Position numbers and translations under genes: made by a program | Assembly (NCBI GenBank): GCA_001643675.2 | Contig: LSRY02000054.1 | Span: 434,001 to 498,000, forward strand | Reading direction: 5' to 3' | DNA from: Monocercomonoides exilis PA203 | Taxonomy: Eukaryota > Protista > Preaxostyla | DNA: 64,000 nt | Notes under the pieces: generated by a model | Seen by the model: the letters and a program-made list of their open reading frames with translations, nothing else | Told to the model about the DNA's origin: nothing | Databases searched by the model: none | In this document: piece after piece, positions 29,494-62,743 of the stretch | Position numbering within the stretch: position 1 is the first letter of the stretch | Layout of the letters: the number at the start of each line of letters is the position of its first letter

Positions 29494-32400
29494 TTAATCC
29501 TTCATTTCTTGTTCCTTGTCATCACTCTCTTCAATTCTTGATTTCCGTTTCCTCACAACAACAACAACAATCACAATCACCACAACAGCTGCCACAACAA
29601 CAACAATCGGCACAACAATGGCTGCAATGATCCCTGCCTTCCTCTTTTTGTTTTGTTCTTTCAGTTTCTCTTGTCTCACTTTCACATACTTCTCATACAC
29701 ATCCTCAGCCTCTGATTCTGCATCTTTTGCTCCCTCCACCCACCCAACAGTGGAATCATCATAATCATTCGCAAACGCAAAGGCATCTTCTTGTTTGCAG
29801 AACTTGTCGAAGTCTGGGGCAATGATGAACAGAGAAGTTGTTTTTGAGCCAGCTGTGTTTGAGCTGTCGATCTCCAGGTTGTGTTCTGAAGGGAGTTTCA
29901 GATTCGATGTTGCCTTGGGCATCTCAATGAATATTGCTCCTGATTTCCCTTCTGGTGCTGAACACGACTTGAATGAACATTTGCTTGACCTTCCAATGGC
30001 CACTCTTGATTCTTTTGAACTGAGGGTGATATCCAACCCTGCTGCTGCTCCTTTCTCCGATTTCACTTCATTCATGTTCAATCCTTCGATTGACACCTTC
30101 GAAGATGAATTGCTCCCATCATTGATGCCGATTGCTGCTCCGTTTCGAACATTCACTTTGCTGATCTCCACAGTGCTCAATGACACCTCGCTGGCTCCAG
30201 AAAATGAAAATGGTGATGATGAGAATGACACAAATGAGGTTTCATCTGTGCATTTCACTGTGTCCATTTCCACACTTCCAGATGTCACACTCACAAGACT
30301 GCTTGCCAAGGGGTTGTCTCCATCAGCATTTGAATTCATTCCTTCTTGTGATTGTGATCCAATTCTGACAAATCGACATGTCGATATTTTCAATGATGTT
30401 GAATCATATCCTGCACTGATCAATGAGTCCCAATTCTTTTCTGTTGAAGAGAATTGGAATGCCAAAAACTTGAATTCCACAATTCTCTGGCAAGAAAAGA
30501 GAATTGATGAAACAGAGACATCACAATCAATGGAAACTTCTATATTTCCTTTTCCATTTTCGTTAACTCCTTCAATTGTTATTCCATAGTTGGTTGAGAA
30601 GATGATTCTTTCAGCCTTCACAGATTCTGCAGTTTTGATAATGTCAATGAAACATTTCCCACTCTTTTCCAAGAAATCATAAGCATCGAATATGCTGTTA
30701 ATTGCTGAATTAACATTGATTCCATTCCCCTTCCCTCCATTCTTCACAAATGCCCTTATCATATAATCTGGTTTAGGGGGAGGAGGATCAAAATAAGTGC
30801 TTGCAAAATCATATTCAGTATAATTGGAATAATCATATCCAACAATAAACCAAGAGTTGTCTCTTCTTGTGTAAGCAGCTGCAAAAGAAGTTTTCATTGC
30901 ATCAGCGATGTCTTTGAATAAATAAACTCCATTCCAAATACCAATGTTTAATCCAGTATTTCTCTTTATCCCATTTTTATTTGCAGAGCAATTCTGAAAA
31001 ACAAGATTCTTCCCATTCGTTGGCCATCTCAGTTGAGATGCTGATCGTGCATTTGACAAATTCAAATAGATTCCACCAGATTCTCCATTTGTGCAACTGC
31101 ATGAGGTGAAAGATGTCACGCCTCCATCTCCCACTGTGAATGTGCTTTCACTGTTATAGCTCGAAACGTAAAATGATCCTTCACTTTCTGTTTGACATTC
31201 AGTGAAAGTGCAGTTATTCAAAGTGACATCCACCACATTATCTCCATATATTTGAACAATAGGTTTGCCACTTGATATTTTTTTCAAAGTCACATTTGTA
31301 AATGAAACTGTATTTGAATATCTTATATAAAAAACTTTATCGTTAAATGAGACGCTTCGACTATCATCAACACACTCAACATTGTCCATATAAAAATCAC
31401 CATGTTCCGAAAGCACAAGGTGATAATTCACCTTTTCATCATTTGTTGATGGCCGGATAAATTTGCAGTTTTTAATTGTCAGACTATCGCATCCGTAAAT
31501 CAAGGCACTGTCATAGTAATATCCATCACTTAATGCTATTGGAAAATGGAATGCCAAGAACATGAATTCCACTTTCCTCAAACATGAAAATAAATACTGA
31601 TCTGAATGCACATGACAATCTATCGAAACTATTGTATTCCCAGTTCCTTGGCTGTTTATTCCTTCAATTGAAATTCCATTGGTAACATTCAATATTATGG
31701 CCTCAACTTCCATTGAAATGTCCGTTTCAACAATGTCAATGAAACATTTTACACTTTTTTCCAAATAGTCATATGCTTCTGTTATTCTGCCCATAGCTGA
31801 TTCCACATCCATTCCATTTCCTTTTCCTCCATTTTTCACAAACACTCTTGTCATATTGTCTGGTCTTGGAGGAAGAGGATCAAAAAATGTGCTTACGAAA
31901 TCAAATTCTTCTTCATTGCTATACTCGTATCCAACGACATTCCATTTATTGCATATTCGAGTGTAATCAGCTGCAAAACTATCCGTCATTGCATCTGCAA
32001 TATCTTTGAATAAAGTATCATTTCTCATTTCAATATATAATCCAGTGTTTCTTTTTGACTCTCCTTCTCCACAAAAGCAATCCTGAAACACCAAATTCGT
32101 TCCATCTTTTGGCCATTTCAGCTGTGATGCTGATGCAATGTTTAACATTCTCAAAAAGATTCCACCAGATTTGCCATCAGAACAACTGCATGACGTGAAA
32201 GAAGTCACACATCCATTCCCAACTGTGAACGTGGACTCATTATAGATGCTACTCACAAAAAACACTTCATTTCCACCTGTTTTGCAATCCGTGAAAGAAC
32301 TGCCGTTTAACGTTGTATGAAAACCATGAATGGAAACGATGGAGTTATCACTTGATATTTTCTTCAAACTCACGTTCGTCAATGTAACTGTATTTAAATT

Positions 32401-33003
32401 CTCTACAATAATAATACCATTAAATGTGACGGTATTACTGTCATCCACGCACTCCACACTATCCATAAATAAATTTTCAAAATTCATTCTCACAAGACAG
32501 TAATCCGCAGTGCCAGCTTTTGTTGATGGTCGAATAAATTTGCAGAATTTAATAGTCAACATCGAGTTGTTTCCAAAAATAAATTGATCTATTGTGTTTC
32601 TTGAGTCATTTTCTTTGTAAGATGTTATTGGTAAATGGAATGCCAAATATTTGAATTCCATTATTCCAGAGCAAAAAAATAAATTTCCACTCACATTTTC
32701 ATCGCATTCAACAGAAACCATTGTGTTTCCTTTTCCATCGCTGTTTACTCCTTCAATGGTCAAACCTCTGCTGAATGTTATTGCCTGAACTTTGAATGCA
32801 GCTGCATCATTGACAACATAGATCTTGCATGCTTGATTATATCCAAGAAGATCATATGCACTTTTCAATGATTTCATTTCCTGACCGATTGATGTGCCAG
32901 TGTTGGTGTCACTTCCACTTTGCTTCACGTAAACTTCATAAATTGCTTCAGCACTCACTGCTTGGAAAATAGATAATGCGAAAGTCAGAATGACAAAGAG
33001 CAT
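29494..33003 (-). CDS. Type-I membrane surface protein with about 3 internal ~360-aa repeats (paralogue A)
   Basis: Intronless ORF. Signal peptide MLFVILTFALSIFQAVSA, repeated modules (VKNGGKGNG, TIEGVNS.G.GNT, GVTSFTSCSC, SFAADYTR), a Val/Ile-rich TM helix, a basic stop-transfer segment and a short tail. Confidence 0.85.
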   Translation of the reverse strand: MLFVILTFALSIFQAVSAEAIYEVYVKQSGSDTNTGTSIGQEMKSLKSAYDLLGYNQACKIYVVNDAAAFKVQAITFSRGLTIEGVNSDGKGNTMVSVECDENVSGNLFFCSGIMEFKYLAFHLPITSYKENDSRNTIDQFIFGNNSMLTIKFCKFIRPSTKAGTADYCLVRMNFENLFMDSVECVDDSNTVTFNGIIIVENLNTVTLTNVSLKKISSDNSIVSIHGFHTTLNGSSFTDCKTGGNEVFFVSSIYNESTFTVGNGCVTSFTSCSCSDGKSGGIFLRMLNIASASQLKWPKDGTNLVFQDCFCGEGESKRNTGLYIEMRNDTLFKDIADAMTDSFAADYTRICNKWNVVGYEYSNEEEFDFVSTFFDPLPPRPDNMTRVFVKNGGKGNGMDVESAMGRITEAYDYLEKSVKCFIDIVETDISMEVEAIILNVTNGISIEGINSQGTGNTIVSIDCHVHSDQYLFSCLRKVEFMFLAFHFPIALSDGYYYDSALIYGCDSLTIKNCKFIRPSTNDEKVNYHLVLSEHGDFYMDNVECVDDSRSVSFNDKVFYIRYSNTVSFTNVTLKKISSGKPIVQIYGDNVVDVTLNNCTFTECQTESEGSFYVSSYNSESTFTVGDGGVTSFTSCSCTNGESGGIYLNLSNARSASQLRWPTNGKNLVFQNCSANKNGIKRNTGLNIGIWNGVYLFKDIADAMKTSFAAAYTRRDNSWFIVGYDYSNYTEYDFASTYFDPPPPKPDYMIRAFVKNGGKGNGINVNSAINSIFDAYDFLEKSGKCFIDIIKTAESVKAERIIFSTNYGITIEGVNENGKGNIEVSIDCDVSVSSILFSCQRIVEFKFLAFQFSSTEKNWDSLISAGYDSTSLKISTCRFVRIGSQSQEGMNSNADGDNPLASSLVSVTSGSVEMDTVKCTDETSFVSFSSSPFSFSGASEVSLSTVEISKVNVRNGAAIGINDGSNSSSKVSIEGLNMNEVKSEKGAAAGLDITLSSKESRVAIGRSSKCSFKSCSAPEGKSGAIFIEMPKATSNLKLPSEHNLEIDSSNTAGSKTTSLFIIAPDFDKFCKQEDAFAFANDYDDSTVGWVEGAKDAESEAEDVYEKYVKVRQEKLKEQNKKRKAGIIAAIVVPIVVVVAAVVVIVIVVVVVRKRKSRIEESDDKEQEMKD

Positions 33004-35012
33004 TCTTTTTGTTGTTTTTCGATCAGGATCACAATTGATCGATTTTTGTTTAATACAAATGCATATCAGATTCATTCAAAGATTTGGTTCCAACGGGTGA
33101 ATATTTGAAATGGAAAGGAATAATCACAAACATATTCAAATATCAATGACTTCCGTCAATCGTTTTTTTGAAGAAAAAAACGGAAAAAAAATAAATAATA
33201 CATACATCAAGTTAGCGCCCATAACATATTTTCGTTGAAGGTTTTGCCATTTCGTTTTGTTTCCAACGTAAATCAAAAGAAAAAAAGATATAATTCCTTA
33301 ATAATGTTTTCGATGACTAATCACATATTTTCAGACGCGAATAACAACTTTCCCATAATTAATTCTTTTTTTATTGTTGATGAAAGAAATAATAATTCAC
33401 TTTCAATTTTCTTTTCTTCATCATGGAAAATTTTTAAAGAATTCGAATAGAAATGCAAGAATAATTTTTGATAAACCTTATGAAAAATTCAATCATAAAT
33501 TTCTTAAAAGAAATTAAATAATCAATCATTATTAGATTTTCAAATCTAACATTTTTAAAACTGCAGTGAGGGAAACTCAAAATAACAACAATGACTTAGG
33601 AAGAGTTTTTGAAAGATAATGAAGTTAAAAAAGTTTTTGTTACGAAAAAGCGTCAGTTTATGATAGTCATTTCGGAACTTCATTCCAATGTCAAGCTTCA
33701 AAGACTTGGACAGCACAGCGAATTTTAATAGACACCAACGCATCCATTTTTTTTTGAAGCAGAGAAGAATGAGGAACTTATTGCAGTCATTTGCTTCAGT
33801 TAAGTTGTTGGGAGATGAATCTCAAGATAATTGATGTATTGTAGTTTATTCAAAAGAAATACTGGCAACTGATACTTATTGCAAAATATCTGCTGCTTTC
33901 AATTCGTTCAATTGCCTTATTCTTATGTTTTTTTGAAGGAATTGAATGGCAAAGAAACGAATTTGAAAGAAGTCTAAAAAGAGACAAAGGATGAAGAGGA
34001 ATGAGAATTTGAGGGGAATGATGTGTTGAACTCAGGAAATGTTTTGAAAGACGGGATATACCAGATGACGAAAGACACAATCATGATGAAGAGGGATTTC
34101 TCATTGTATCATGAAAAATACATCTTCTTTGGGAGCCTATCTGTTTTCGTTTCAGTGAAAAATAATGGAAAGAGAATAATTCTGATAGAACTTAGGAATG
34201 AAAAGAAGAAGAGAATGTCATGGCTCATTCGATTTCTCTTTCAAAGAAACAGAGAAGAACAAGGCATCACAATCGAAAAAACAAATTGGAGTGTTGATCA
34301 GTCATTTCCTTCAGCTTTTGATATCCTCATTAAGAGATCTATGTATTCCAAATGGAATGTTTGTGATGTTTCAGAAACAGAATTGGAAATTCTTTTTTGG
34401 TTGTTTAATCTGCCTCAATTGAACAGAAAATAGATGCAATCTTTCCAACAAATCTCTCAAAATGGTGATCATTTTTCATTGTTATATTGTTTTTCCTTCT
34501 TCATTTTTGATATCTTTTGTTGAACTTCAAAGACAACAAGATTTCATTCAAAATTCTTCTTTGAAAATGATCTTTTTCAGTCTCATTGTTTATTAACAGG
34601 ATGTTGATTTCTTTTCACATTTCCTTTTTGGATGTCAAACTGTCTCTTTTTCAAATTCGAATTTTATTTGTTTCTGATGAATAACTGTTTTGGGGGGAAT
34701 TCACGATGATGATGAGTGTTTGTTAAAAATATAATAAAATTAATATTTTGTCAGAATGAAAATGAAATGATAATTTTGTCAGTGCTTTTATCAAAAAGGC
34801 TTCAAATGTTGATGTGTGTGCAGAATAGTTTTTTTGAATGAAAATTGTATTTGCACATGGTGAATATCATTCTGAGAAAAAGAAACCAAAAATTCAAATA
34901 AAGCCATTGAGATGCTCATTTCAATGTTTATTTCTCGCTTTTGATGCTCTCTTTTATGTTTTCTCCATTTTTCTCTCATTATTATTTTTCTTTCCTTTTT
35001 CCTTTCTTTTTT

Positions 35013-35640
35013 TTATTCTTCCTCATCCCCCAGCTTCACCGAATTGATCCCCATCCCGATCTGCCCTCCCTGATACGTCCCTCTCTTCAGCTTCGTCTTC
35101 GCTGCCCTGAATCCTTTTCCCCGAGTCTGCAGCAGCTTCTCCGACGCCTTCTTGCCCCACGCCTCGCCTTTCATCTCGAAGCTGTTGTCCGCCAGCCGCG
35201 GGTCAGTAATCACATACTTGGACGGATCGACACGGCGGAAGGGGGTGTGGCGAGAGGGAGAGGGAGAGGGAGAAGGAGAAGGAGAGGGAGAAGGGGAAGG
35301 AGAAGAGGAAGGAGAAGGAGATGACTCGTTATTGTTGGATGGGGATGAACTGGGAGCATGATTTGCGTTTGATGTTATTTTGTTGTTGTTCTTCTTTTCT
35401 GAAAAAGAGGAAGAAGATTCTGATTCAGAATCAGAAGAATCAGAGGAAGAATCAGGGGAAGATGAATCAGAGGAGGAGGAAGAAGAAGAATCAGAACTTT
35501 CTTCTTTCTTTGCAGAAATTGCTGGTTGAGTTTGCTTCGCCTTCTCGTTTGCATTCACTTTTTTGGCTGTTTCTTTTGCTTCTTCTTTCTTTTCTGGTTT
35601 GGCTGAAGAAGAAGAAGAGGAGGAGGAAGAAGAAGAAGAA
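35013..35640 (-). pseudogene. SRP40: 5'-truncated SRP40/Nopp140 (NOLC1) C-terminal fragment
   Basis: PFRRVDP...DNSFEMKG..WGKKASEKLLQTRGKGFRAAKTKLKRGTYQGGQI..GINSVKL is the SRP40_C domain. It is preceded by Ser/Lys blocks, but no LisH N-terminus is seen. Confidence 0.7.
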
Positions 35641-38600
35641 AAAGATGTTGAGGCGGAATGAAAATGGTGAGAGAAGGAGACGAAGCGGAAGAGCGGACTG
35701 GCAGAACAGCTGCTGGAGAATGACAAGTTCATCCGGATGAATTAGATGAAAATTTTGGAGCGAAGCTGGAAGCATAACGCAGAGGTGAAGGAGCTGCAGG
35801 AGCAGCTGGCGGAGATGAAGGAGAAGGCGGGGCTGATTGGTGTAAGGATTGAGAAGGAGAAGAAGCGGCGGACGCAGCAGGTCGGGGCGGAGAGTAAGGA
35901 CAGTGAGGGAACAGGGGCAGTGGCAGGGGCAGGGGTTCCGCTTGTCACGCTTTCTTCGTTGTCGTCTGCGGGAGGTGGGGTGGTTCCGTATTCGGCGTAG
36001 TTGATTCTGCCTTCGGGGATGTGTGAAAAGTGCCAAGAAAAGTTGCTTCGAGCATCAAAAATGGTGGAGTTGCGATGCTTGAGTCAAACCTGATTGGAAA
36101 GGAGGTTGTTGTGAAAGTGGGGAGCGAAGCGAGTGTTGTGGGAGAAGCAAACAGAGGTTGGAGAGGAGGTGGTGGAAGTGAGTGAACGAGATCTGGGATC
36201 AGCGAGGAATCAGAAAAGAACAGCGCTGGGACAAATGGAAGTGGGGGAGGCAGTCAGAGTGGTGGTGGAAGGACAGATGTAATTGTGCAGCAGAAGATGA
36301 ACAAGATGGAGAAGGAAATGAAGATGCTGATGGCGCCGTCGAAAGTGCAGTAGCAGACGTTAAGTGAGCAGAAGGCGCTGTTCAAGGAGGTGATTGAGAA
36401 TCAGAAGAATGAGCTTGCGAAATAGAAGCAGGAGAATAAGAAAATGAAGGCGTCGTATGAAGAGAAGGTGGAGCGGCTGGTTGGGTAGGTGAATGAGCTG
36501 GAGGAGCAGGTTGGGCTTGGGGACTTTGGAGGTGGAAAGGAAGGTGTGACAGAGGAGAAATGGGTAAGTGCAAGAGATGGGTCGAGGATGAAAAGGAGGA
36601 GGAACAGAAACGGAGGCGGAGAATATGATGAAGCTGAGAAAGGTGAAAAGGGAGAAGAAATAGATGAGAGCGAGCCGCATGGGTTTCATCCATCGCAGTG
36701 TAAAGATCTAACGAAAGAGTGAAAGAACTGGATGCTAGCTGTTGTTCTAAATTGTGAAGAAAAAGGGGTAGTGAAGGCGATTATGTGCAGCGGCTGTACA
36801 TGCTTCTTGAGCAGATGACAGACGGCCGAGACCGGGAAGAGTCGGAGTGGCCAGTGACTTCGCGTGGTGGAACGGGGCAGGGTTGTCTGTGGCAGGCGGG
36901 GCGCCTTTGCCAAATGGGAAGACAGAGATGAAGCCGCTGATGAGCACGGTGTCAGGTGTGCTGGGGCAAGTGACGTACGAAATGGTTTATGTGCTTCGGA
37001 TGTCGCACATATATTAGTCGTCTATTCCGATTCAGTCGAGACAGCAGTGGCTAAAGACAGGACTGCGATAGAAGCAGGTGTGGACGCTGTCGAAGATTCA
37101 GGGGATATATGGAGACAAGATATTGGCAGATTTGAGCAATGGCAGCTCTGGGTGGGAAGATGGGGTGCTTCCAAGTCAGTTGTTTTGGGGATATTTTGTG
37201 TATGCGGCTGTGTGGGAAGTGCGCGGAGAAATAGAAGAAGGAGGTGGTGCTGTTGAAGATGATCTTCGTGGTGGAACTGTTCCGAAAAAAATTTTCGGAG
37301 GTGTAGCAGTTGGGTGGTATGTGCCGGAGGAGTTTCCTGGATGCGAGCTGTATGACTTCCTGTACTGCAACACGGTGTTGTTTGAAGGTGAGCAGCAGCA
37401 GTAGCCAATGAAAGAGAAAGAGGACTTCTTGACGTTGTCGTTCCGGATGTGTCGGATGCGTATCAACATTTTGCTTGAAGGGGAATTGGGGAAGAAGATA
37501 AAGTTGTTTCTTGGGGAGTTGGAAGAGATTAAGTTGGACAAGGGGGAGGCAGAAGCGTATGTGTTTCTTGGATTGCAGCTGAACATCTGAGGAAGAAGCT
37601 GCGATGTTGAAAGAGGCGATGAATGCGCAGTCAGATGCGATATGCAGTGAAGATCCACTGATTTCATCATCTTCAGCAACATCACCGTCAATGGGTGTAG
37701 CTTGTTGAGGCAATGCGAACGATGAAGTGGAGTCTCTTCTGCATGTGCTATCCACAGACGCTATTAGCGCTGTCCCTGAGGAACTTCTAAGACGCGTGTT
37801 GGCTGTTTTGATACTGTCTGCCATATTAAGTGCTGGTACTGTGGGCATATGAGGACAACGACTTTATCAAGCTGTTCCAGCACAGCCGGATGTGTGCAAT
37901 GCTGCTTACCGACGAGAGCCTCTTTCATAGTCTGAGAATGTTGCGGTTGAAAAGATTGTGAGCTGTCACTTTGCGCTGCGGAAGCAAACACCTGACGAAT
38001 AGATGCGGGAGATGTTGTGGATGGTGCTGCTGGTTGTGGAGCTAGTGGAGCTACAGCTGTGTAGAACGATGTGGAAAGGGCGATCTGCTTTGGGCTGCTA
38101 CTGGAGGATGGGCAGCAAGTGATGCAGTTTCACAAGGAGATGGCACAACAGAGGGAGGGAGGAGGAGTCTAAATCTTGTCATGCATCATATGTATATGCT
38201 TCTTCAACACAGCACAAACAGATTTCGAGTGAGATGGTGATGGCGATCAATAACATGTTGCTGTCACTTGAGGCTGCATTTGGCTTGATCGATCCTCAGA
38301 TTTCTCCGACCATATTATCATCGGCATTATCATAATCATCAAATAAGTCTTTTTTTTATTTTTTCCTTTTCTTCTATCTCTTTAATTCTAATTATCTCTA
38401 TTTTCTTTTGAAATGCACTTTCTTTTTCTTCGATACTTGCTTCCGCTCTGTCCATTAACCTGTTTCATCTTCCATTTTTTGTTTATTATTGCCTTAATTT
38501 TCTTTTAATGAACTTGTCAAGCGAAATAAACATTTTATTAATCTTAAAATACGTTGTCTTCATTTAACAGATTTCAAATAAAATGTGAGAAATATAGAAG

Positions 38601-39900: not shown

Positions 39901-39949
39901 TTTTGATGACTCATGTTCATACCAATGGTTTGAAGCTACTCTTCTGAAA

Positions 39950-41834: not shown

Positions 41835-42373
41835 TGCAACAAAACAGTTAATTTAAAATAAATCCAAAATTTTATTAACATAAAAGAACAAACAAATCAC
41901 AAACCATCAATTTTGTTAATAATTTTGTTTATTTGGACTTGAATAAGTTGTATTAGCTTCTGTGAAACATTGATGTTCATTATGAGCAATGAAAAATTCC
42001 GATTTTATACAAAACAAGAATTCTTATTATCGTTAAAATATATTCAAAAAATAATCGAAAAATACCATGAAAATTTCATGAATCAACAATTGCAAAACAG
42101 TTTAATCAAGAAAACCCCTTTTTCATATTAAAAAACTGAAATTTTAATTTTGATCAAATACTTGGATGCATAATTTTTTGCTTCAATATATTTCTTCTCA
42201 CTAATAAGTTTGCAATTAACAAACGAACATTTTCATGCTTGTTTCAAATTTTCATAATAATTATGGTAACGGAATGATAATGAATTTTCTTCCATGGGTC
42301 ACATATTTGATCTGATGTCACTTTTCTAAAAAATTTTGACAATTAGAGAATACAATGAGTACAAATTCGGGAC

Positions 42374-44241: not shown

Positions 44242-44272
<31 letters not shown>

Positions 44273-46989: not shown

Positions 46990-47127
46990 AGTGAAGTTTA
47001 GGAAACTTTGATATGTCCATGAAGTGCAAAATTAGGGAAAAAACAATCATTTCTTAATTTTCGACAAATGAATAATTTCTCGACCGACAATTTGCACTTA
47101 AAAAAAAATGTGTGTCACAGAGGCCTA
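42374..47127. mobile_element. Non-autonomous hAT-like element (4.75 kb) carrying a degenerate acidic-protein gene; no TSD
   Basis: TIRs TAGGCCTCTGCGACAGAC / GTGTGTCACAGAGGCCTA (16/18 match), with subterminal CGAC repeats clustered at both ends. The internal minus-strand frames (about 43260-45900) contain stops. Confidence 0.7.
46213..46311 (+). repeat. Perfect 11-bp minisatellite (AGGAAGATTTG)x9
   Basis: Nine exact tandem copies, read directly. Confidence 0.95.
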
Positions 47128-47247
47128 CAGCTAACCCTGCGTGACACACTAAATTCTGAAGTGATTTTTTTCTTTTTTCTTTTTCTTTTTCTTTTTCTTT
47201 TTTCTTTTTTTTTTTTTTTTTGATTTTGACAAAAGTGGTATATAACT

Positions 47248-50200
47248 TAAACGTGTGTTACTTTATGACCATTGACAATTAAAAAATTGTTATTGACGGA
47301 CGTGATTTTTATTTTCCCGTCAGGTCCTAATTAATAATTAAAATATTGAACAATTTTAACAAATGAGATTAATAAAAGAATGGAACAAGTTATTCTCAAC
47401 ATTTATTGTAAAAATAATAGAACTTTATGAATTGTCTCAAATAATCATAATTGAAAAAAAATATTACTAATAAAATAATTTCATTAAGGTTCAGTGACCG
47501 CTCAGTTAATCTGGGAATTAATAGATCGACAGACGGTCAGAAATGTCAGTGGAAAATAATCCGTCAGGAGTTGCAAGAAAAGACCACTTTGATCCTGCGA
47601 TATTATCATTTGAAGAAGTTTTTAAAGAAATACTTGAAAAGAAATAGATCGTTTGTTTATTTTAAACAAATGTCTTTTTTATTTGGATAAATTTTATTTG
47701 AAGGAGAAACTTTTCAAATTCCATTCTGAACAATTGAAAAAGTGTGGCTGTAAGTTTATTCAACTGGAAAAGCTTTGCGTATCAAAATATGGACAAGGTT
47801 TGATATTTTTCAAAAAAAGTGAAGTTCTTTCTTTATATATGCATAAAAGTTTTCAAACATCCACGTTTAAAGGAAGTATTCATGTCGAAAATTACACTCG
47901 AATCTTTGAACAACTGTTTGTGGATTTCTTATGTCAAAGTTGAAAAAGATGGAACTCCAAAAAAGGATTGGCATCGATATTTCTTATGTCCTAATTGCAA
48001 AGACGGTATAGCATGCGGAGTTACGGGGAGAAAAAATTACATCACAATAGCAAACCACAAGTGTGATTTGTTGAAAACGCAACATATTTCAACATTACTG
48101 AAACAACATCATCATCATGGCAAACGACTTTTTCTTGAAACTTCAACTTTTCCCAAATTATCTTTGCTGAATCAAGATCTGGAAAAACAGTTTGTTGCAA
48201 TGGTCAGTAAATGCAACATTTCTTTTATGGCAGCTTCATCGAAAGAAATGAACTCATTTATTGGTTCATTAATAAGATATGGACAAGAGAATCCAAATGT
48301 TTCACAGAAAAATATTTTCCCATATTTGACAAGAAGGAAAATATCCCAGATGATTATCAAAGAGAAAATCATATCTGAAAAGGTCAAGCAAAAAAGGATA
48401 GCAAACACAAGTCTCAGTGTAATGATTGATGGAGCTTTGGTTGGAAACAAGCACTTCACTGTTGTCACAGTTGTCCCAATATCATTGAAGGCTTCACCTT
48501 TCTTTTGGGGATTGTACGAGCAATGTTTCTCAACGGAGGAGTTTTTCAATCTGCTTCAACATTTGTCTCAAGAATTCTCCACATTCAATTCTTTTGTGAG
48601 AAGTTACTGCACAGACGGATTCGCTCCACAATTAAAAGCCATTCATCAAATTTCCAAAGAATGCTCAAACAAAAAGTCATTTGATAATAAATGTTTTCCT
48701 GTTGCTCCAGAATTCATTTATTGTTGCAACCATCTTGTAAATTTGGTCATATCCACATCTTTCACTAAAGTTCCTTTTTTGAATGATTTAAAAATGAAAT
48801 TGCAGGAATTTTCTCAAAAGTCCCATTGCAAAATCTACAAATCTTTACTCAGAAAATCCGTTCCTTTCTTTGTCTCAACGAGATGGCATAGTTTATATTT
48901 ATTATGTGAATTCATCAGGAAAAAATACGATGTTATTTACGCTAATTACATGTTAGACTCAATTAGTATTATTGATATAATCAAAACAGAGTTGTTTTTG
49001 TATCCTTTATTCAAATTGCATTTATTCTTTGAACATGATTCAACAAAGTTGTGGAAGGCCTTTCCTCAAATTCTGAAAACATTCGGCTATTATTTCAGTT
49101 TGCTTCAACATTCGCTTTTTTCTGAAGAAAAATGGCACAATGCCATCACAAACATTTTGGTTCAGTTGAATAACTACTTTTTGGAAGGTGCCAGAGGAGA
49201 AATACTTTCTCTTTCATTTGCGTTATCTCCAATTGGAATGCAGCAATATCGCAGAAATAAATTTGTTCAGTCTTTTGTTGAATATTCATCTTTCTTTCAA
49301 AATTTTAATAAAGCTGATTGTTTTTCAAAAACTTCAGACAAAAGTGTTGGAATCAACAAAACAAATCAAATTGCATTACATTTTAACGGAACATACAAAG
49401 ATCTTTCATCTTCAAGATGCACAACATCCAATATTATTATTGAACCGAACAATTTTCAACACCAACATTCAGTTTTGAGCACAGACGCTCAATCTCAAGC
49501 GCTAATTCGTTTGAGCTCGGAGAGTTCAAAGAAAATTAACGTTTTTTTTCAAAATCCTTTAACATGTTCTTTTGAAAATGATTCTTTATATTCGAATACT
49601 CCTTTTAAAATTATTGATCTTTTAGAAATAATATTGAGAAGTGACACATTGACACAGACATAGGATACTGATTTTGTCCAAGAAAATTCAACCGATAGTC
49701 AATCTGAAAGCGATGAATTGGGAATACTTGCAGCGGAAGAAATCGAAGCAGATGATATGTTTGAATTATCAACTGATGAAGATGATTTCGAATATTGTGA
49801 TCTTGTTGATAATAATACTTTAATATCTTCCTCTTCCTCTTCATCCTCCTCTTCCTCTTCCTCCTCTCCTCCAACCTCCACATCTTCACCTTCTGCTTCC
49901 GCTTCAGCTTCGTTATTATCATCAACTTGTTTTTCTTCCTCTTCTTCCTCCTTTTCGTCTTTTTCTTCCTCTTCCTCTTCCTCATCCTTATCCTCTTCTT
50001 CTTCTTCTTCTTTTCCTTTATCATCATCATCTCCTTCTTCCTTTTCGTTTCCACCTTCCCTCGTCTCACACGACACTTCTCTTTCCGCTTTATCATTAAC
50101 ACAAGTTGTTAGTTCAGCTGCTGATTCTTCTTATTCTTTTCCTTCCTCTTCTTCCTCTTCGTCTTCTTTAAATTTCAACTCTTCTATTGACGCAGGATCT

Positions 50201-53200: not shown

Positions 53201-55159
53201 AGAGAATGAGATTTGAATAACGCAGAAGGCATCAAATATTTGAAATCTTCTATTCACTTGTTTTGATACATTTAACACTGTTCTTATCACCTTCTTCTCA
53301 TCCACTTTGCTTTCACCAATAAATTAGTTGTTGACGTGCATGCTTACGGATTCATTTGCTATTCATTCTTCATTCGCAATCTCTTTGAAAAACTGTTTTT
53401 CATCTTCAATAATGTTCCGTTAATCTTTTCAAATAAAAAGCCCTTTGGACATTTTGTTTTCTTTTTGAAAGTTTGTTCACATATCGAATTGTTTCATCGT
53501 TATCACAGTCATCGCAGTGAGTGTCAAAATATTTATAACATGATCAAATTCAATAAGATTTTCATGTTCATCATTATCTTTATCTTCTTCTTCTTAGACA
53601 AAAAATTATCAAAACTTTTTTTTCAACTTGTTTTCCGTTCATTCTGAATATCCAATTTCAAATAACAACCTCATGAATGTTCCTCTTTTTACAAGCAAAA
53701 TAAAATAAACAGAAATTTTTAAGTTGAAAAAAGTGAATTCATCTCAATCACATTCGTTTTCTCATTTTTTTACCTCAAGTAATTCATTTTTCCTCAATGC
53801 AGTTTGCTGCACGTCAACATCAAAACTTCATGTTAAGAGCAATGATTATGGATCTCAAATTTTTCGTATTCTTCCAAACAGAACGCCTCCATCTGAATTG
53901 GCATTGCCTCACTCTTCTCATTCGTCAACTCCCACTGCAACTCACAGAAGTTCAAAAAACTTTCAACATTATCATCCTCCTATTAATGGGCAAAACACTA
54001 TATCGTTGTCATTCTTCCTGTTCATTTCATATATCCTCCAAAACTCTTCTTTCTTTTCATTCTTTCTATTATTCATCTTCACAAAATACTTATGTGTTAT
54101 AATCAACATTTTTGAATCAATATTTATCAATTTTTATATCTGTTATTCTTCAATCTTTTTTATCATCAAAATAAACTTCGTTGTCTCCTTTCAGATTCTT
54201 TGCAAAAGAATTTTTCACATCATAATTTATTTGCTTCACTTTCTTTTGACCAAACGCTTGAAAATTACACATTTGTTGTGAAATGTGACTTTGTTTATCT
54301 TTTCAAACATCATAACTTTTTTTCATTCAAATACACAATATAATTAATTTTCACTTTTTTGTGATTAAAAATCCAATTTCCACAAAAAATTTTGTCAGAT
54401 TTATTTCATTTTTTCTTACAAAAAAAATTGTCGTTGAAGAGAAAAAGCTTTTGATATGAAAGAAATAATAAGTGAAATGAAAGTTATTTTTGGACGTTTT
54501 TTTATCTTTAACTTCGCAATTTGCTGATTAAGAAACATTGTCTTCAGAAAAGGCATCAGTTCAATCATTTATTAAATAATAAATCTATTTCAACTGTTCA
54601 TATACTTTCAAGGTTTCTATGTATTTAATCCAAGCAAAAATGCTTTTTTAGCTTAAAAAAGAAGAAGTTAATAACTTTTTCAAGTTTTTACCCAATAAAT
54701 TGAACTTCAATCGAATGCTTTTCGTAAAATAAAGTCGAGCAGTTGTTAAATGTGGATGAAAACGGTCTAATAAGCGCAAAGAAAGGCAAACTGACAATTC
54801 CGAAGAAACAAAAAACTTGAATCGGTATTTATTTGAATTCAAAATATTTTCCATGTAAATATCAATGTTTTTGAAAAAGCATCTCTTTTAGAGCATAATT
54901 TGATGATAAAATCGAAATCTTTGAAAGAATTACTTTCACAAAGTCATTATGGTTTTTCACCAAAATTTTAAAAAAGAAAAAATTTTTTAAATAAATAATG
55001 TGAAAAAATTGCTAAATATAATTATTGAATAAAGATTTTTTGAAAAAACAATTGAAATATATAAATCCAAGTTATCTTTGGAAACTTCATAAAGACTGAC
55101 GGATTCAATTAATGACTGACGGACGTGAAAAAAATTTTTCCATCTGTAACACATGTTTA
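47248..55159 (+). mobile_element. hAT DNA transposon, 7.9 kb, 8-bp TSD ATATAACT
   Basis: TIRs TAAACGTGTGTTAC / GTAACACATGTTTA. TSD at 47240-47247 and 55160-55167. Copy A holds the empty site with a single ATATAACT. Subterminal TGACGGA repeats are present. Confidence 0.93.
47882..50874 (+). pseudogene. hAT transposase with two in-frame nonsense codons
   Basis: Motifs MIDG (D1), YCTDG (D2), CCNH (CxxH), TRWHS and the dimerisation/E motif SPCSEVSCERVISKMRNILGDKR. Intron 50217-50269. Stops are TAG at 49661 and TAA near 50648. Confidence 0.85.
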
Positions 55160-55193
55160 ATATAACTATTCATCGACAAAAATGTACCTATGT

Positions 55194-55448
55194 GGGTGAT
55201 TATTTTTGAAATCATAACTTTTTTCGTAATGTCAATTTTTCAAAGGTTGGTTGTCATTGGAGAGATATTTTGCATTTTCATGTTAAAAGCATCACAACTA
55301 TTTTCAAAACAAAATTTTTTGATTCAAACAATATGACGACGTCTTTCACAAGCCTTTTCTCTTTTAAGTGTTCTTTTGCAGATATTCAAGGAACTATTTT
55401 CATCCGAATTTTTTGAATGAATCATTACAATGTCAAAAATAATCACAC
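55194..55448. mobile_element. MITE, GGGT-TIR family (duplicate of 25467-25721)
   Basis: GGGTGATTATTTTTGA...TCAAAAATAATCACAC, flanked by ATGT and ATAT. Confidence 0.68.
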
Positions 55449-55688
55449 ATATATTATTCAATCTTATTCAAACAAAATTTTGAGAAATCAATAAATCGAA
55501 ATTTTTTATCAAAAACGATTTTTCATTGAAAGATTTGCATATTATGAAATAATAAGTGATTATTTGAATTTAATGCAGTTATCGTATGTGTGGAAAATGA
55601 ATAAAATGAGGCAAAAATAAAGTTTATGTGATGAAAAAAGTGATGAAAACAGATGTTAATTAAAGACATGAACATAGCCCGGGAAAGG

Positions 55689-57873
55689 GACAAAACCCGG
55701 GAATATCAAAAGAAAAACTCAAAAAAGAAAAAGTAAGTTGAAGAATTTGATATTGAAAAAATCAAACATCTCCCTTTTGTTCTTCAACAGTGCTATATTT
55801 AACTTCTTTTCAAAATGATGATATTATTGAATTAATTCAATAAAATGAATGAATCACAAAGTCATAATGTTTGCTTTTTTTTTTCAATTTGTCTTATTTT
55901 CCTTCGTCTTCAGAGCTTTCAAAAGTTTTTGCCACTGAAGAATTTAGAAAATAAAAATCAAAAGCTGAAAAAAGAAATTTTTTTTTCAAGAAAAGAGATT
56001 ATATACAAAAGCATTATTTCATCAGGCTTGGTTTCTTCTTCAGCTTAATATCGACTAACATCAACTTTGAGACAGGGAATGGATCCACAACATAATGGAA
56101 GACCGAATTTTTTAAATATTGAGGAACAAGAAGAAATAGAAGACTGTGCCAAATCTCATTCACTTTCAACGGATTAAATAACATTCAAAGATATCAGTTA
56201 TATATTTTGGTTTTTGTTTTGATATTTATATTTCCTTTTTTGATGTCGTCTTTTCAGTCCGAGAATGTTTTGCAAAGAAAAACCCGAAACAAGGATGATA
56301 ACAGCGAATTGACAGAAATTAATGAAAAATGGACAAGACGGTTCAAAAAAAAAACCATTGCCTTGCAAATGGTATAACCAAAATCCATAGACACAAAAAG
56401 GTTGCTTTCATCATCAACGACAAACATTTCCAAGTTATTTTCATTTCAAATGGATATACTGAAAACAAACAAAATTTCCGCTGATATGATATTTAATATA
56501 GACGAAACAGGTGTCAGTTAATGAAAATCTGATGACAATTTCGTGGTCAAACGATCAGATCAAGAAGACACAATGTTACACTACAAACTTCCTCAGCCAA
56601 ATGCAACATTGGTTTTTGGAGTTTTTGCAGATGGATCTTCTATTAATCCAGTGATGATTTGGCCTTCAAAAACTGTTCCAAAAGATCTTGCAGTAAAAAA
56701 ATATAAACGACTAGAAATAGTGTCCAACGGAAGCGGGCGTAGAACAAAAAATGACTGCGAACAAATCATGATGAAAAACATTTAACCAACAGTAAACAAA
56801 AAAAGAATTGAATTACATGGATCGGAAGCATAGGTGCTTATTATTATGGATGGGCGTTTATCGAGGCTTTGCTCGCATGTTTTTGCACGGAATCGTGAAC
56901 ATTATATTGAAATTATTATTCTTCGTTCGCACACCACACATTTGACACAATAGCTTAATAACTATGTGTTTGCTTAAATTAAAAAAGACTGTATTCATTT
57001 TTTTTGCCTCCAACAGAAAGTGGAATATCGTCATATTGAAAAACTCTTGTGTCATCATTGGCAGATGTTTTGAGTGCTGCGTTGGAACCAAGAACTATAA
57101 AAAAAATCGTTCTATGCAAGTGGAATTGAGCCCTTCTATCCTTCCGTTGTTTTGGATCGATTGCCAAATCAGTTGTCAAACGAAAAATTTTCTTCAATTA
57201 GTTCATCGGCCCGTGCTTCAAATGGAGTTTAAAACATGAAAGTTTTGACAAGTGATAATTTTGTTCAGGAGAACGAACAAAGTGAAGAAGGTTTGAAAAT
57301 TTTCATGAAATTAGAATGAAATGAGTATTTTATTATTATTATTTTTTTAAATTTCGAGAAAAAGAAAAATGTGTATCCTGCACCTTGAAAGATAGTCTAC
57401 AAAAGCAAATGTCATAGAGAAAAGCAAACGTCGATAAATGTGATGGGAAAACAAAATAAAAGATTTCAGAACAAACTCATGAAGAAGAAATGGATGAACA
57501 TTTTCTGTTTTCAGGAGAAAAACAAAAAAGAAAACAAGTGTTTGAAACAAAATGTGGAAAACTATTTTATTTCAGCTGAAAGCGTCTTTTCTTTTCAAAC
57601 AATTTTATTTTGCTACTTGTTTATAGAATTATTTTCTTTTTGTTCGATTATTTTCATATAGTCTCGTATCAGCGAATGTTTCTTTTCGATTGTGATTATA
57701 TATGCTCGTTTCATTTGAAATCAAGAAAAACTTTTTTAAAAAACATTGAATGAACATTTTTTCAAATAAATAATTTTTTTTTATTTTTGTTAATTCAAAA
57801 TAAAAAAGAAATCAGGAAGTGGAGTTAACAATTGAAAAACTTTTCAATTGATTGGGCATTCCCGGGTTTTGTC
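55689..57873 (+). mobile_element. pogo/DDE_1 element remnant (duplicate of 25966-28152)
   Basis: Same inverted repeats and DETG/MDG motifs as copy A. Some stops are shared and some are private. Confidence 0.8.
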
Positions 57874-59239
57874 ACTTTTTAGAGTTTTGTTTAAGACTTG
57901 ATATTTGATCTGATTATTTCAGGTTTTGAGTGTGAATAAAATATGATTTTGTGATTTGTCAATTTCTTTCTCGAAAAACAAAAAACAATTATTATCTGAA
58001 AAAAAAAGATTGTTTCCAACAGATATAAGTTCCATCTTCAATAAAAATATTTATTCCCCTCTTTTTTGATAATGGTTCATTGAAGCGTGACAATTTCGTT
58101 TGCGAAACAAGACAAAATATAACATATGAAATAAATAGTTATAAATGAACAGACAATCAGATTATCCACATTATTCAAAGCACAATCTCCAGATTATTGT
58201 TCAATAATTGGGTCATTGAACAAAATTCACTGTCACAATTATTCTTATTATCGTGTCGAGCTACGAATGAACATTTGAAATGCTCTAATTGAATAATAAC
58301 ATAGAATTTGGAGAACAACACGAAAGAAAAATACGAGAATTACGAAAATGAGAATCATCATCACTGAAAAATATAATCGAGTTTAATATTTGAAATTATA
58401 TCGAAACACAACAATAAGTGCAAATGCTTTCAAAACATAACGAAAATCGTGAGATAAAACAACTGAAATAAAATTTCTCATCATCATTTATCTCTGACTC
58501 CAAAACAAATCAACATGGAAATCAACAAAACACAAACAAGAAAACATTTTCATGGAAAGGTATTTCAGTTTCATTTATTGATTGAGAATTTTTAACATCT
58601 GTTATTTTTCTAAATCTTTCATTTTGTTCTCTCAATCTTTTTGTCAGTCTTTCTTTATTCACGCAAAAAATCTTATAAAATTTTCCAGAGCCATTGTTTT
58701 TTGTGAATAACCAAACTCAATTCGTTATTTTCTTTCAAATGTGTTTCATTTTTTCTTTTTTGAGTTTTATATTTTGTTTCATTTTCCAAATGGAATCTTA
58801 TTTCACAGATTGCTCTTTCGTCTGCTTTGTTATTCAACTGCATTTAAATACTAGTCATTTCGTGAATCGAGGAAAATACCATTTTCACTTCAATTTTTTT
58901 GTTCATTTCGATAATAAACTCATTCTTTGTTGTTTCCATGATCTTTTTTTCGTTAAAAGAAAAAACTCTCTTTTAGACATAACCGTTCTAAATTCTTTCA
59001 ATTTTGTTTTGTCTTCAACAAAAAAGATTAACATTTCTTTTGTCTTTTGACAAAGTTATGTTCTTGATTAACCATGAATTTAAAAAGACAAAATAAAAAT
59101 AAAAAATAGAATAAAAAAATAAAATAAAATATAAAAATATAATAAAAAATAAAAAAAACAAGGCAAATAATTTAAAAAAGATGAATACACATGGAAGCAC
59201 AAGAACAATTTTTGTTCAAAAAGAAAAATCCACTTTCCA

Positions 59240-62200
59240 TTAATCCTTCATTTCTTGTTCCTTGTCATCATTCTCTTCAATTCTTGTTCTCCTCTTCCTC
59301 ACAACAACAACAACAATCACAATCACCACAACAGCTGCCACAACAACAACAATCGGCACAACAATGGCAACAACGATCCCTGCCATCCTCTTTTTGTTTT
59401 GTTCTTTTAGTTTCTCTTGTCTCACTTTCACATACTTCTCATACACATCTTCAGGCTCTGATTCTTCATCAATTGCTCCCTCGATCCACCCAGCTGTTGA
59501 TTCATCAAAGTCATTCGCAAACGCAAAGACATCTTCTTGTTTGCAGAACTTGTCGAAGTCTGGGGCAATGATGAACAGAGAAGTTGTTTTTGAGCCAGCT
59601 GTGTTTGAGCTGTCGATCTCCAGGTTGTGTTCTGATGGGAGTTTCAGATTCGATGTTGCCTTGGGCATCTCTATGAATATTGCTCCTGATTTCCCTTCTG
59701 GTGCTGAACACGACTTGAATGAACATTTGCTTGACCTTCCAATGGCCACTCTTGATTCTTCTGAACTGAGGGTGATATCCAACCCTGCTGCTGCTCCTTT
59801 CTCCGATTTCACTTCCTGAACATTCAATCCTTCGATTGACACCTTCGACGATGAATTGCTCCCATCACTGATGCTGATTGCTGCTCCACTTTCCACATTC
59901 ACTTTGCTGATGTCCATTCCCCTCAATGACACCTCTCTAGCTCCAGAAAATGAAAATGGTGATGAAGAGAATGACACAAATGAGGTTTCATCTGAACATT
60001 TCACCGTGTCCATTTCCACACTTCCAGATGTCACACTCACAAGACTGCTTGCCAAGGGGTTGTCTCCATCAGCATTTGAATTCATTCCTTCTTGTGATTG
60101 TGACCCAATTCTGACAAATCGACATGTTGATATTTTCAATGATGTTGAATCATATCCAGCACAAATTAATAAGTCCCAATTCTTTTCGGTTGAAGAGAAT
60201 TGGAATGCCAGATACTTGAATTCCACAACTCTCTGGCAAGAAAAGAGAATTGATGAAACAGAAACATCACAATCAATTGCCACTTCTATATTTCCTTTTC
60301 CATTTTCGTTAACTCCTTCAATTGTTATTCCATAGTTGGTTGAGAAGATGATTCTTTCAGCCTTCACAGATTCTGCAGTTTTGATAATGTCAATGAAGCA
60401 TTTTCCACTCTTTTCCAAATATTCATATGCATCGAATATGCTGTTGATTGCTGAATTAACATCGACTCCATTTCCCTTCCCTCCTTTTTTGACAAACACT
60501 CTTGTCATGTTATCTGGTTTTGGGGGAGGTGGATCAAAATATGTGCTTGTGAAATCATAAAGTTGATAAACTTTCAAATCACATCCAACAATATTCCACC
60601 TGTTGTCTCTTCTTGTGTAATCAGCTGCAAAACTTAATTTCATTGAATCTGCAATATCCTTGAACAAAAAGTTATAATTCATCGCCAATAATAATCCAGT
60701 ATTTCTCTTTTCTCCATTATAAGCAGCTGAGCAGTTCTGAAAAACAAGATTCTTTCCATCTTTTGGCCATTTAAGTTGAGATGCAAATTGAATGTTGGGC
60801 ATGTCCAAATATATTCCGCCGGATTTGTCATTTGTGCAACTGCATGAAGTGAAAGATGTCACGCCTCCATCTCCCACTGTGAACGTGCTTTCACTGTTAT
60901 AGCTCGAAATGTATAATGATCCTTCACTTTCTGTTTGACATTCAGTGAAAGTGCAGTTATTCAAAGTGACATCCACCACATTATCTCCATATATTTGAAC
61001 AATAGGTTTGCCACTTGAAATTTTTTTCAAAGTCACATTTGTAAATGAAACGGTATTTGAATATCTTATATTAAAAACTTTATCGTCAAATGAGACATTT
61101 CGACTATCATCAACACACTCAACATTGTCCATATAAAAATCACCATCTTCCGAAAGAACAAGGTGATAATCCACATTTTCCCGATTTGTTGATGGCCGGA
61201 TAAATTGGCAGTTTTTAATTGTCAGACTATCGCATCCGTAAATCAAGGCACTGTCATAGTGATATCCATCGCTTAATGCTATTGGAAAATAGAATGCCAA
61301 GAACACGAATTCCACTTTCCTCAAACATGAAAATAAATATTGATCTGAATGCACATTACAATCTATCGAAACCATTGTATTCCCAGTTCCTTGGCTGTTT
61401 ATTCCTTCAACCGTAACTCCTTCATTCTTGTCGAATGCGATTTGTTCTGCTTTCAATTTATCTTTAGCATCAATTATGTTGATATAGTATCCAATAAAAC
61501 TCACATCATCCGCAAATAAACAATATCCCTTTTTCACTGACCCCGTTGGAGAATCAAAATTCAATCCATCTCCATTTTCTGCACCACTTTTCACATAACA
61601 AGTTGTGACGATGCTGTAGTACTCAGAGACAATATCGATCTCTGCGTTATCGATTCCACAAATTATAAATTCATTGTTATCTCTATTAGTGTAATTGGCC
61701 GCAAAACTTGCTTTCATTGTATCTGCTATATCTTTGAACAAATAATCATTATTCAAAACAAAATACAATACAATATTTCTTTTTGACTGTCCTTCTCCAC
61801 ATTTGCAATCCTGAAATACTAAGTTCGTTCCATCTGAAGGCCATTTCAGTTGAGATTCTGATGTTATATTTGGTCCATACAAACAGATTCCACCAGATTT
61901 GCCATCAGAACAACTGCATGACGTGAAAGATGTCACGCCTCCATCTCCAACTGTGAATGTAATTTCACTGTTATAGCAATTAACATACAATGTTCCTTCC
62001 CTTTTTGTTTGACATTCAGTGAAACTGCAGTTATTCAAAATGACATCCAACTTGTTATTGCTATAGTCTCCATTTATGCTAACAATTCCATCACCACTTG
62101 AAATTTTGTTCAAACTCACGTTCATCAACGAAACTATTTTTGTAAGATACGTAAAAAAAACTTGGTGTGAAAATATGACAGTGTTGCTCTTATCAACACA

Positions 62201-62743
62201 CTCAACAGAATTCATGAACAAATTTCCCCCACGCAAATCTAAAAGGTGATATACCAAATTTTGGCTATTTGTTTGAGGCCGAATAAGTTGACAGTTAGTA
62301 ATTGTTAGTTCTCCATCATCTCCGAAAATAAATGCACAATTGCCAAATTCTCTCAAAGATATAGGAAGATAGAATATCAAATATATGAATTCAACCTTTC
62401 CCCTGCACATGAAAAAATATTCTTCTGCATACACATCACAATCCATTGAAACCATTGTGTTTCCATTTCCATCGCTGTTTACTCCTTCAATGGTTATTCC
62501 TGAACTTTTTCCAAATATTATTTTTTCTGCTTTGAATGCAGTTGTTTCATTGACAACATAGATCTTGCATGCTTGATTATTTCCCAGAAGATCATAGGCA
62601 CTTTTCAATGATTTCATTTCCTGACCGATTGATGTTCCAGTGTTGGTGTCACTTCCACTTTGCTTCACATAAACTGTGTAAGGTTTTTCTTCATTCAATT
62701 CTTGTGATGTTGCAAATGCAAATGTCAGAATGACAAAGAGCAT
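59240..62743 (-). CDS. Type-I membrane surface protein with internal repeats (paralogue B)
   Basis: Intronless ORF with the same architecture as 29494-33003. The C-terminal third is nearly identical to paralogue A, while repeats 1-2 are patchily divergent. Confidence 0.85.
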   Translation of the reverse strand: MLFVILTFAFATSQELNEEKPYTVYVKQSGSDTNTGTSIGQEMKSLKSAYDLLGNNQACKIYVVNETTAFKAEKIIFGKSSGITIEGVNSDGNGNTMVSMDCDVYAEEYFFMCRGKVEFIYLIFYLPISLREFGNCAFIFGDDGELTITNCQLIRPQTNSQNLVYHLLDLRGGNLFMNSVECVDKSNTVIFSHQVFFTYLTKIVSLMNVSLNKISSGDGIVSINGDYSNNKLDVILNNCSFTECQTKREGTLYVNCYNSEITFTVGDGGVTSFTSCSCSDGKSGGICLYGPNITSESQLKWPSDGTNLVFQDCKCGEGQSKRNIVLYFVLNNDYLFKDIADTMKASFAANYTNRDNNEFIICGIDNAEIDIVSEYYSIVTTCYVKSGAENGDGLNFDSPTGSVKKGYCLFADDVSFIGYYINIIDAKDKLKAEQIAFDKNEGVTVEGINSQGTGNTMVSIDCNVHSDQYLFSCLRKVEFVFLAFYFPIALSDGYHYDSALIYGCDSLTIKNCQFIRPSTNRENVDYHLVLSEDGDFYMDNVECVDDSRNVSFDDKVFNIRYSNTVSFTNVTLKKISSGKPIVQIYGDNVVDVTLNNCTFTECQTESEGSLYISSYNSESTFTVGDGGVTSFTSCSCTNDKSGGIYLDMPNIQFASQLKWPKDGKNLVFQNCSAAYNGEKRNTGLLLAMNYNFLFKDIADSMKLSFAADYTRRDNRWNIVGCDLKVYQLYDFTSTYFDPPPPKPDNMTRVFVKKGGKGNGVDVNSAINSIFDAYEYLEKSGKCFIDIIKTAESVKAERIIFSTNYGITIEGVNENGKGNIEVAIDCDVSVSSILFSCQRVVEFKYLAFQFSSTEKNWDLLICAGYDSTSLKISTCRFVRIGSQSQEGMNSNADGDNPLASSLVSVTSGSVEMDTVKCSDETSFVSFSSSPFSFSGAREVSLRGMDISKVNVESGAAISISDGSNSSSKVSIEGLNVQEVKSEKGAAAGLDITLSSEESRVAIGRSSKCSFKSCSAPEGKSGAIFIEMPKATSNLKLPSEHNLEIDSSNTAGSKTTSLFIIAPDFDKFCKQEDVFAFANDFDESTAGWIEGAIDEESEPEDVYEKYVKVRQEKLKEQNKKRMAGIVVAIVVPIVVVVAAVVVIVIVVVVVRKRRTRIEENDDKEQEMKD

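Follow-up and report, generated by a model that had tools for sequence, protein, structure and literature searches.

Mosaic paralogues in a family of tandem beta-helix surface proteins of Monocercomonoides exilis: a probable case of ectopic gene conversion between family members

How two intact genes for surface proteins, lying within some 30 kb of each other, come to be almost indistinguishable over some blocks and only remotely alike over others is the question raised by a stretch of 64,000 nucleotides (nt) of the Monocercomonoides exilis assembly (C52:434001-498000), hereafter the window, to whose numbering all positions refer unless a contig is named. The two genes, here called A and B, are carried by the two copies of a segmental duplication of about 10 kb, arranged in direct orientation, as established by self-BLAST, sliding-window alignment and extension past the window end (coordinates in Table 1); each encodes a signal peptide, three units, a stalk, a transmembrane (TM) helix and a short tail. 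An initial annotation, made from the letters of the sequence, had proposed that conversion between repeats and between paralogues generates variant ectodomains here, in the manner of mosaic VSG or vlsE formation. The explanation that we consider probable is a more ordinary one, namely ectopic (non-allelic) gene conversion, together with unequal recombination, among paralogues.

The identity profile of the two copies is strongly heterogeneous. From 25433 to 31667, compared with 55160-61410, windows are 96-100% identical, apart from low patches at 66-76% (30796-31091, coding) and at 73% (26628-26727, non-coding); an exact run of 450 nt (28423-28872 against 58143-58592) covers both of the non-coding stretches that had been described as close to identical (28430-28860 and 58150-58580), and the block in the middle of the second repeat for which near-identity had been reported (31075-31665 against 60830-61410) measures 92-99%. 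In the adjoining 31668-32713, against 61411-62447, identity is 34-77%, and over the 5' end and upstream flank (32714-34261 against 62448-64000) it is about 83%; in all, A/B identity ranges from 100% in the exact run to 34-50% inside the coding sequence. The alternation of near-identical and divergent blocks is therefore real, and neither the identity profile nor that of synonymous divergence (dS) shows uniform divergence across coding sequence and flanks. Indeed, dS between A and B is 0.07 for residues 471-650 and 1.5-1.6 for residues 111-280 and 361-470, as well as for the divergent block 31668-32713, which is a difference of more than 20-fold between blocks, with a block-wise ratio of nonsynonymous to synonymous divergence (dN/dS) of 0.24-0.69. 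The upstream flanks of A and B are 83.4% identical (path length 0.20) and the downstream flanks 95% (divergence about 0.05); the roughly four-fold greater divergence of the former indicates that the 3' 6.2 kb have been re-homogenised after the original duplication.

The closest relative of a given gene also changes along its length. In a comparison of five genes by sliding identity, the closest pair is A-B at residues 457-647 (91-99%), then B and L004, a paralogue on contig C27, at residues 647-707 (91-98%), then L004 and L005 at residues 727-787 (91-97%), and A and L002 at residues 767-800 (94%). Trees of adjacent segments group A with B (support 100/100), then B with L004 (87/90), then L004 with L005 (100/100), and under the approximately unbiased (AU) test a B+L004 group is rejected for the first segment and for the third (p = 1e-63 and p = 0.002), as is an A+B group for the second (p = 4e-4), the tested groups having been chosen after the trees were seen. 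For 17 paralogues the pairwise homoplasy index (PHI) is 0.763, compared with 0.831 after permutation (z = -17.6; 0/1000 permutations). One tract of B (Table 1) can be followed to its probable partner: at the sites at which A and B differ, 52 are L004-like and 4 A-like, and a max-chi2 scan delimits coding positions 2004-2195 of B (max-chi2 86, 0/300 permutations). Of 253 unit pairs, with a median unit identity of 66%, 11 have in common tracts of 120-213 nt that are about 95% identical (93-98%). Taken together, PHI, segment trees, AU tests, max-chi2 scan and the spread of dS uphold the proposal that gene conversion between paralogues builds mosaic ectodomains.

The opposition, initially suggested for A and B, of a constant membrane-proximal part to a variable distal part extends to the whole family: median dS is 0.24 for unit 3 and 0.75-0.90 for unit 2, at similar dN/dS (0.3-0.44), as would fit a frequent homogenisation of the anchor module, and in windows of 150 nt many paralogues match the C-terminal 1.1 kb at 94-99% identity. 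Thus, both features by which ectopic conversion is recognised are present, a large membrane-anchored family with phylogenetic conflict along the gene and a homogenised anchor module beneath a diverse distal ectodomain.

The history of the pair may be pictured as follows. An old duplication of about 10 kb would have given rise to A and B, the upstream flank of which has since diverged by about 17%; a recent event of at least 6.2 kb would have made the gene's 3' two-thirds and the downstream flank uniform again; short patches of about 120-600 nt would have been copied in from other paralogues, some of them on other contigs; and frequent conversion would keep the membrane-proximal unit and the anchor alike family-wide, the distal units remaining diverse. 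The patches end in conserved motif-coding stretches, which is expected where recombination requires local identity; the observation that switches fall near conserved anchors holds for two junctions, at EGINSQGTGNT (about residue 470 of A) and at GVTSFTSCSC (about residue 665 of B). Non-homologous end joining (NHEJ) is missing from M. exilis, whose genes for homologous recombination form a fairly complete pathway (PMC6759080), a combination that would make template-dependent repair from paralogues a natural source of the patches; the exchange would then presumably be driven by the repair of double-strand breaks by homologous recombination. So understood, ectopic gene conversion would mould this family across chromosomes, and the case bears on how surface diversity is kept up in a gut commensal that has neither mitochondria nor NHEJ. 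No new mechanism is revealed by it, the copying of segments between paralogues being a familiar mode of surface-gene family evolution.

Several points weigh against this explanation. The genome searches, which covered the 82.3-Mb, 101-contig assembly, gave for the two largest A/B divergent blocks best matches of 71-81% and none above 81%, which rules out a recent conversion of these blocks from an identifiable donor; their origin may lie in old conversion, in donors since lost or in ancient divergence that was retained. No other contigs encoding MONOS_4908, the annotated product of B, are on record, and the junctions are known from one assembly. The choice of the AU groups after inspection of the trees has been mentioned; moreover, a GENECONV-like permutation test of the longest identical run, in which 49 of 136 pairs gave p = 0/500, was discarded, since such runs accumulate in the conserved 3' region and regional differences in rate confound it. 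Lastly, the distal units are diverse despite the exchange, and selection for diversity may be at work.

If such selection is given a larger part, the beta-helix families might be regarded as a self-shuffling reservoir, in which, for want of end joining, every double-strand break has to be mended from a homologous template, possibly including pseudogenes such as L004, conversion goes on producing new variants of adhesins or receptors, and selection keeps the distal units diverse. We hold this to be unlikely; if true, an organism supposed to be a harmless commensal would possess a functional arrangement for generating diversity.

Still less probable is a programmed system of antigenic or adhesive variation, in which segments from a donor reservoir would be converted, in a targeted or favoured way, into expressed genes. 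It is true that the mosaics draw on several partners, that a constant anchor module adjoins variable distal modules, and that L004, the partner of the B tract, has one in-frame TAG and may be a pseudogene donor (the TAG possibly marking a young pseudogene, or else a sequencing error). However, A, B and most paralogues are intact and full-length and have their own conserved upstream flank; a mosaic of several donors is what was found, and neither targeting to the surface gene nor a layout with an expression site and silent cassettes was seen. Pairwise dN/dS exceeds 1 in none of the 136 paralogue pairs, giving no gene-wide sign of positive selection, and for the orphan blocks the assembly holds no donor above 81%. 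Furthermore, a non-coding transposon copy in the flank shows the same patchy exchange: positions 26578-26728 of the repeat in copy A match a copy on contig C49 at 92-94% and that in copy B at only 73-83%, so that the patching is not confined to the surface gene. For these reasons, the initial likening of the locus to a VSG- or vlsE-like system finds no support.

The comparison with such systems is instructive in other respects. In Trypanosoma brucei, as in M. exilis, variants of a surface gene are composed of segments of several paralogues, including pseudogenes (possibly so in M. exilis); VSG genes, on the other hand, depend on an expression site of their own at a telomere, on an archive of silent copies and on 70-bp repeats, whereas the M. 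exilis copies look complete, with their own upstream regions. Borrelia vlsE/vls and Neisseria pilE/pilS similarly yield patchwork surface proteins from short segmental tracts; there, the transfer is unidirectional, from promoter-less cassettes adjoining one expression locus, and defined cis elements are involved, none of which is seen in M. exilis. The likeness to the var genes of Plasmodium falciparum is more extensive, comprising a large type I membrane family, non-allelic exchange that includes exchange across chromosomes, junctions in conserved blocks, and a variable ectodomain on a conserved membrane-proximal part; the fold differs (DBL/CIDR there, beta-helix units here), and M. exilis is regarded as a commensal. 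Families of the var type are characterised by exclusive expression, subtelomeric location and measured mitotic recombination rates.

Two further rivals to ectopic conversion can be dealt with briefly. A single duplication followed by divergence through point mutation, the divergent blocks evolving fast under diversifying or relaxed selection and with no conversion, is very improbable: flanks common to both sides show that a duplication occurred, and across the family the anchor module varies less than the distal units do, but point mutation after one duplication cannot yield a dS spread of more than 20-fold (0.07 against 1.5-1.6) between blocks of one gene pair with dN/dS steady at 0.3-0.5, nor does it agree with non-coding flanks four-fold apart in divergence, with a B tract that matches a gene of a different contig at about 98%, or with strongly supported conflicting trees. 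An assembly or polishing artefact, paralogue reads having been mis-joined or mis-polished in a nanopore assembly, is unlikely to lie behind the mosaics and, to our mind, scarcely credible: the family is highly repetitive and the assembly is based on Oxford Nanopore reads (PMC8767320), but patches of 200-1000 nt differing by 25-50% cannot come from polishing and are spanned repeatedly by long reads, mosaicism is found in many family members on several contigs, and 57-74% of the 31-mers sampled from gene B are present in four sequencing runs, two of them from 2016 and thus older than the runs of 2022 (one sample and study, and therefore of weak independence); no run is listed as RNA.

Returning to ectopic conversion between paralogues, it may be asked whether exchange also takes place between the repeats of one gene, as the initial annotation had argued by deriving divergent blocks of B from other repeats of A. 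The three motif examples offered are present in the translations; they are no evidence of donors, all of them being family consensus. ASQLKWP..G, SFAADYTR and LNG.TF.EC...ESTFTVGDGGVT.F.SCSC form part of the consensus of 48 units, and 13 of 17 paralogues have PDNMTRAFVK at the start of their last unit; the other repeats of A are therefore not identified as donors. The end of B repeat 2, attributed to A repeat 1, finds its closest match in unit 2 of L004 (92-99%), unit 1 of A reaching no more than 67-75%; the LNNC.FTECQT block of B unit 1, attributed to A unit 2, is 86% identical to it, but a two-unit paralogue reaches 84% and B unit 2 itself 83%, A unit 1 being the outlier in this comparison. 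Specific repeat-to-repeat donors within the gene were accordingly rejected. At the level of the family, the picture depends on the part of the unit considered: in the N-terminal third, first units are split from second and internal units at 100/100, whereas in the C-terminal third positional grouping is rejected (AU p = 0.0013), with a borderline result for the middle third (p = 0.066), the group again having been named after the trees were seen. Exchange between repeat positions is thus supported at the level of the family only. The junction between units 1 and 2 exists in two types, that of B being common to L006 and the internal junctions of the seven-unit gene L061, and that of A to L002, L004 and L005; judged by the identity of these sequences (53-79%), the junction exchange is old.

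As for the proteins themselves, both reading frames are open, as had been observed, over the full lengths given in Table 1. The annotated product of A begins at Met25, the start of the signal peptide, which places the end of the coding sequence (CDS) at 33003 in A and at 62743 in B; the latter is also the end coordinate of the region marked in the initial annotation. Among the genes compared, A and B alone have a frame that remains open for 24 codons (MNLICICIKQKS...) before the signal-peptide Met (33004-33075 and 62744-62815); the same leader holds a stop in L002, L004 and L005, and is thus probably 5' untranslated region in A and B. A hidden Markov model (HMM) of the unit resolves each protein into three units, of which two measure about 375 residues and the third is shorter and divergent. 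Each protein has 32-37 cysteines and 11-15 NxS/T sites (32 and 15 in A), and a single hydrophobic helix of about 28 residues close to the C-terminus, followed by a tail of about 19 residues. The public 1023-residue model of B (P0002, MONOS_4908) is without about 145 residues of unit 1 (HMM positions 85-229), the genomic reading frame being uninterrupted; the predicted intron would cut the beta-helix and is probably an annotation artefact, which is a caution for annotators, since gene models of this family may be wrong.

The fold of the unit was approached by means of an AlphaFold2 model of unit 2 of A, built on the 48-unit family alignment, which has a strand-rich pattern, a predicted local distance difference test score (pLDDT) of 93.3 and a predicted template modelling score (pTM) of 0.91. 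A wide search with VIA-align placed first the glycoside hydrolase BT_1002 (5mqp_A; Z 22.4, root-mean-square deviation (rmsd) 3.2, 284 residues aligned), with PL6 alginate lyases, phage tailspikes and the pneumococcal adhesin PfbA at Z 19-21 and about 50 beta-helix entries at Z 22.4-17; ESM Atlas gave template modelling scores of 0.63-0.68 to Beta_helix/DUF1565 clusters, and Foldseek against the PDB gave weak matches only (E 0.03 or worse), all of them beta-helix proteins. In Pfam, A and B show the TM region alone, with no match at E <= 1 to PF13229 (Beta_helix), to Chlam_PMP (PF02415), or to LRR or VSP; the distant family members P0032 and P0035 carry a precomputed PF13229. Since the structural matches are all right-handed parallel beta-helices, the modelled unit has this (pectin-lyase-like) fold, and A and B are type I membrane proteins with three tandem beta-helix domains; they may act as surface adhesins or receptors, probably binding glycans or particles. 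The resemblance to the bacterial and phage beta-helix proteins (PL6 lyases, BT_1002, tailspikes, PfbA) is one of fold, over 250-289 residues at Z 19-22 and rmsd 2.7-4.1; sequence identity is 10-15%, and A and B differ from them in being tandem, eukaryotic and membrane-anchored. With the Giardia VSPs and the BspA-like and Pmp-like proteins of Trichomonas vaginalis they have in common a metamonad expansion of repeat-built type I proteins with a TM helix and a short tail; there is no sequence kinship, and the unit of A and B is a beta-helix domain of about 375 residues.

The family to which A and B belong comprises at least 38 loci in the genome search, many of them on contigs C52 and C38, and in the protein search all 38 matches were M. 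exilis entries named 'uncharacterized protein MONOS_...'. Most loci have two units and products of about 810-840 residues, the subfamily with A and B having three; among the 30 best loci, A, B and most others are complete reading frames with signal peptide and TM helix, internal stops being present in about 4. An upstream flank of 1.5-2 kb is common to five genes: A, B, the three-unit genes L002 (C24) and L004 (C27), and L061 (C52:569629-577545). In the last of these, which has an intact reading frame of 2639 codons with six full beta-helix units and a terminal one, the upstream flank is 81-82% identical to those of A and B. MONOS_336 (7937 residues) and MONOS_9641 (7752 residues) have about 20 units each, so that in the wider family the number of units varies from 2 to about 21. 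Relatives are few: a unit-profile search of 1.84 billion representatives returned 139 only, which include these giant M. exilis proteins, one from Blattamonas nauphoetae that is named 'adhesin-like', and an M. exilis protein with a single unit, annotated as 'putative tyrosine kinase domain protein' (E = 1e-27). In the genome papers on M. exilis and Preaxostyla that were searched, neither the family nor gene conversion is mentioned. The family, one of lineage-specific tandem beta-helix surface proteins of oxymonads, is unannotated and is here given a first description.

Table 1. Position and properties of the two duplicated copies, of genes A and B, and of the associated features (window numbering unless a contig is named; ORF, open reading frame; aa, amino acids).
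Feature	Position	Strand	Remarks
Duplication copy A	25433-35640		about 10.2 kb, with gene A between its downstream flank and some 2.5 kb of upstream flank; self-BLAST and sliding identity
Duplication copy B	55160-64000		passes the window end to about 65712 (window-equivalent); extension beyond the window via L058
Block probably homogenised recently	25433-31667		93-95% to 55160-61410; takes in 4 kb downstream of the gene together with its 3' two-thirds
Divergent block of A (old or orphan)	31668-32713	-	most of unit 1 and the unit 1/2 junction; B counterpart 61411-62447
Gene A	29494-33075	-	1193-aa ORF; likely CDS 29494-33003 from Met25; annotated 1169-aa product P0001
Gene A unit 1	31852-32940	-	unit HMM
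Gene A unit 2	30721-31851	-	unit HMM
Gene A unit 3	29827-30720	-	unit HMM; followed by stalk, TM helix and tail
Gene A TM helix	about 29554-29637	-	short basic/acidic tail after the helix
Gene B	59240-62815	-	1191-aa ORF; likely CDS 59240-62743; annotated MONOS_4908 (P0002)
Gene B unit 1	61601-62680	-	unit HMM
Gene B unit 2	60467-61600	-	unit HMM
Gene B unit 3	59630-60466	-	unit HMM; followed by stalk, TM helix and tail
Probable conversion tract in B	60594-60826 (core 60621-60812)	-	about 98% to unit 2 of L004 (C27:44941-48360)
L004	C27:44941-48360		three-unit gene; one in-frame TAG at about codon 302; annotated MONOS_9155 (887 aa) starts after the stop
Dispersed non-coding repeat	25940-28190; B copy about 55665-57910		about 2.2 kb, with inverted termini some 50 bp long; copies number more than 20 and are 68-85% identical

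The surroundings of the two genes contain repeats and large reading frames of other kinds. The 2.2-kb dispersed repeat entered downstream of the gene before the A/B flanks were homogenised, and a second dispersed repeat, of about 260 bp, lies at 25463-25726, at the left edge of the duplication. Between the two copies, on the plus strand, a 614-residue reading frame (47819-49663) that lacks any Pfam domain is one member of a dispersed family (at least 72 scored matches, 318 first-look candidates), many copies of which are broken by stops, intact ones reaching about 820-950 residues; it probably encodes a transposon protein. The remark that neighbouring transposable-element genes decay is only loosely borne out, many copies of this family being broken elsewhere; no transposase domain of Pfam was found in the large reading frames of the window, the Pfam scan of the neighbouring ones yielding SRP40_C only. 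This SRP40 C-terminal domain (E = 6e-24) is encoded at 35013-35732 on the minus strand, at the upstream end of the duplicated segment, and part of the same reading frame recurs past the window end beside copy B at about 82-93% identity. Finally, a plus-strand reading frame of 2827 residues (8702-17185), with no Pfam domain, was considered as a member of the beta-helix family and rejected as unrelated to it; it contains degenerate tandem repeats (about 9.4-11.7 kb), and its region has a GC skew of -0.66 at 10-12 kb.

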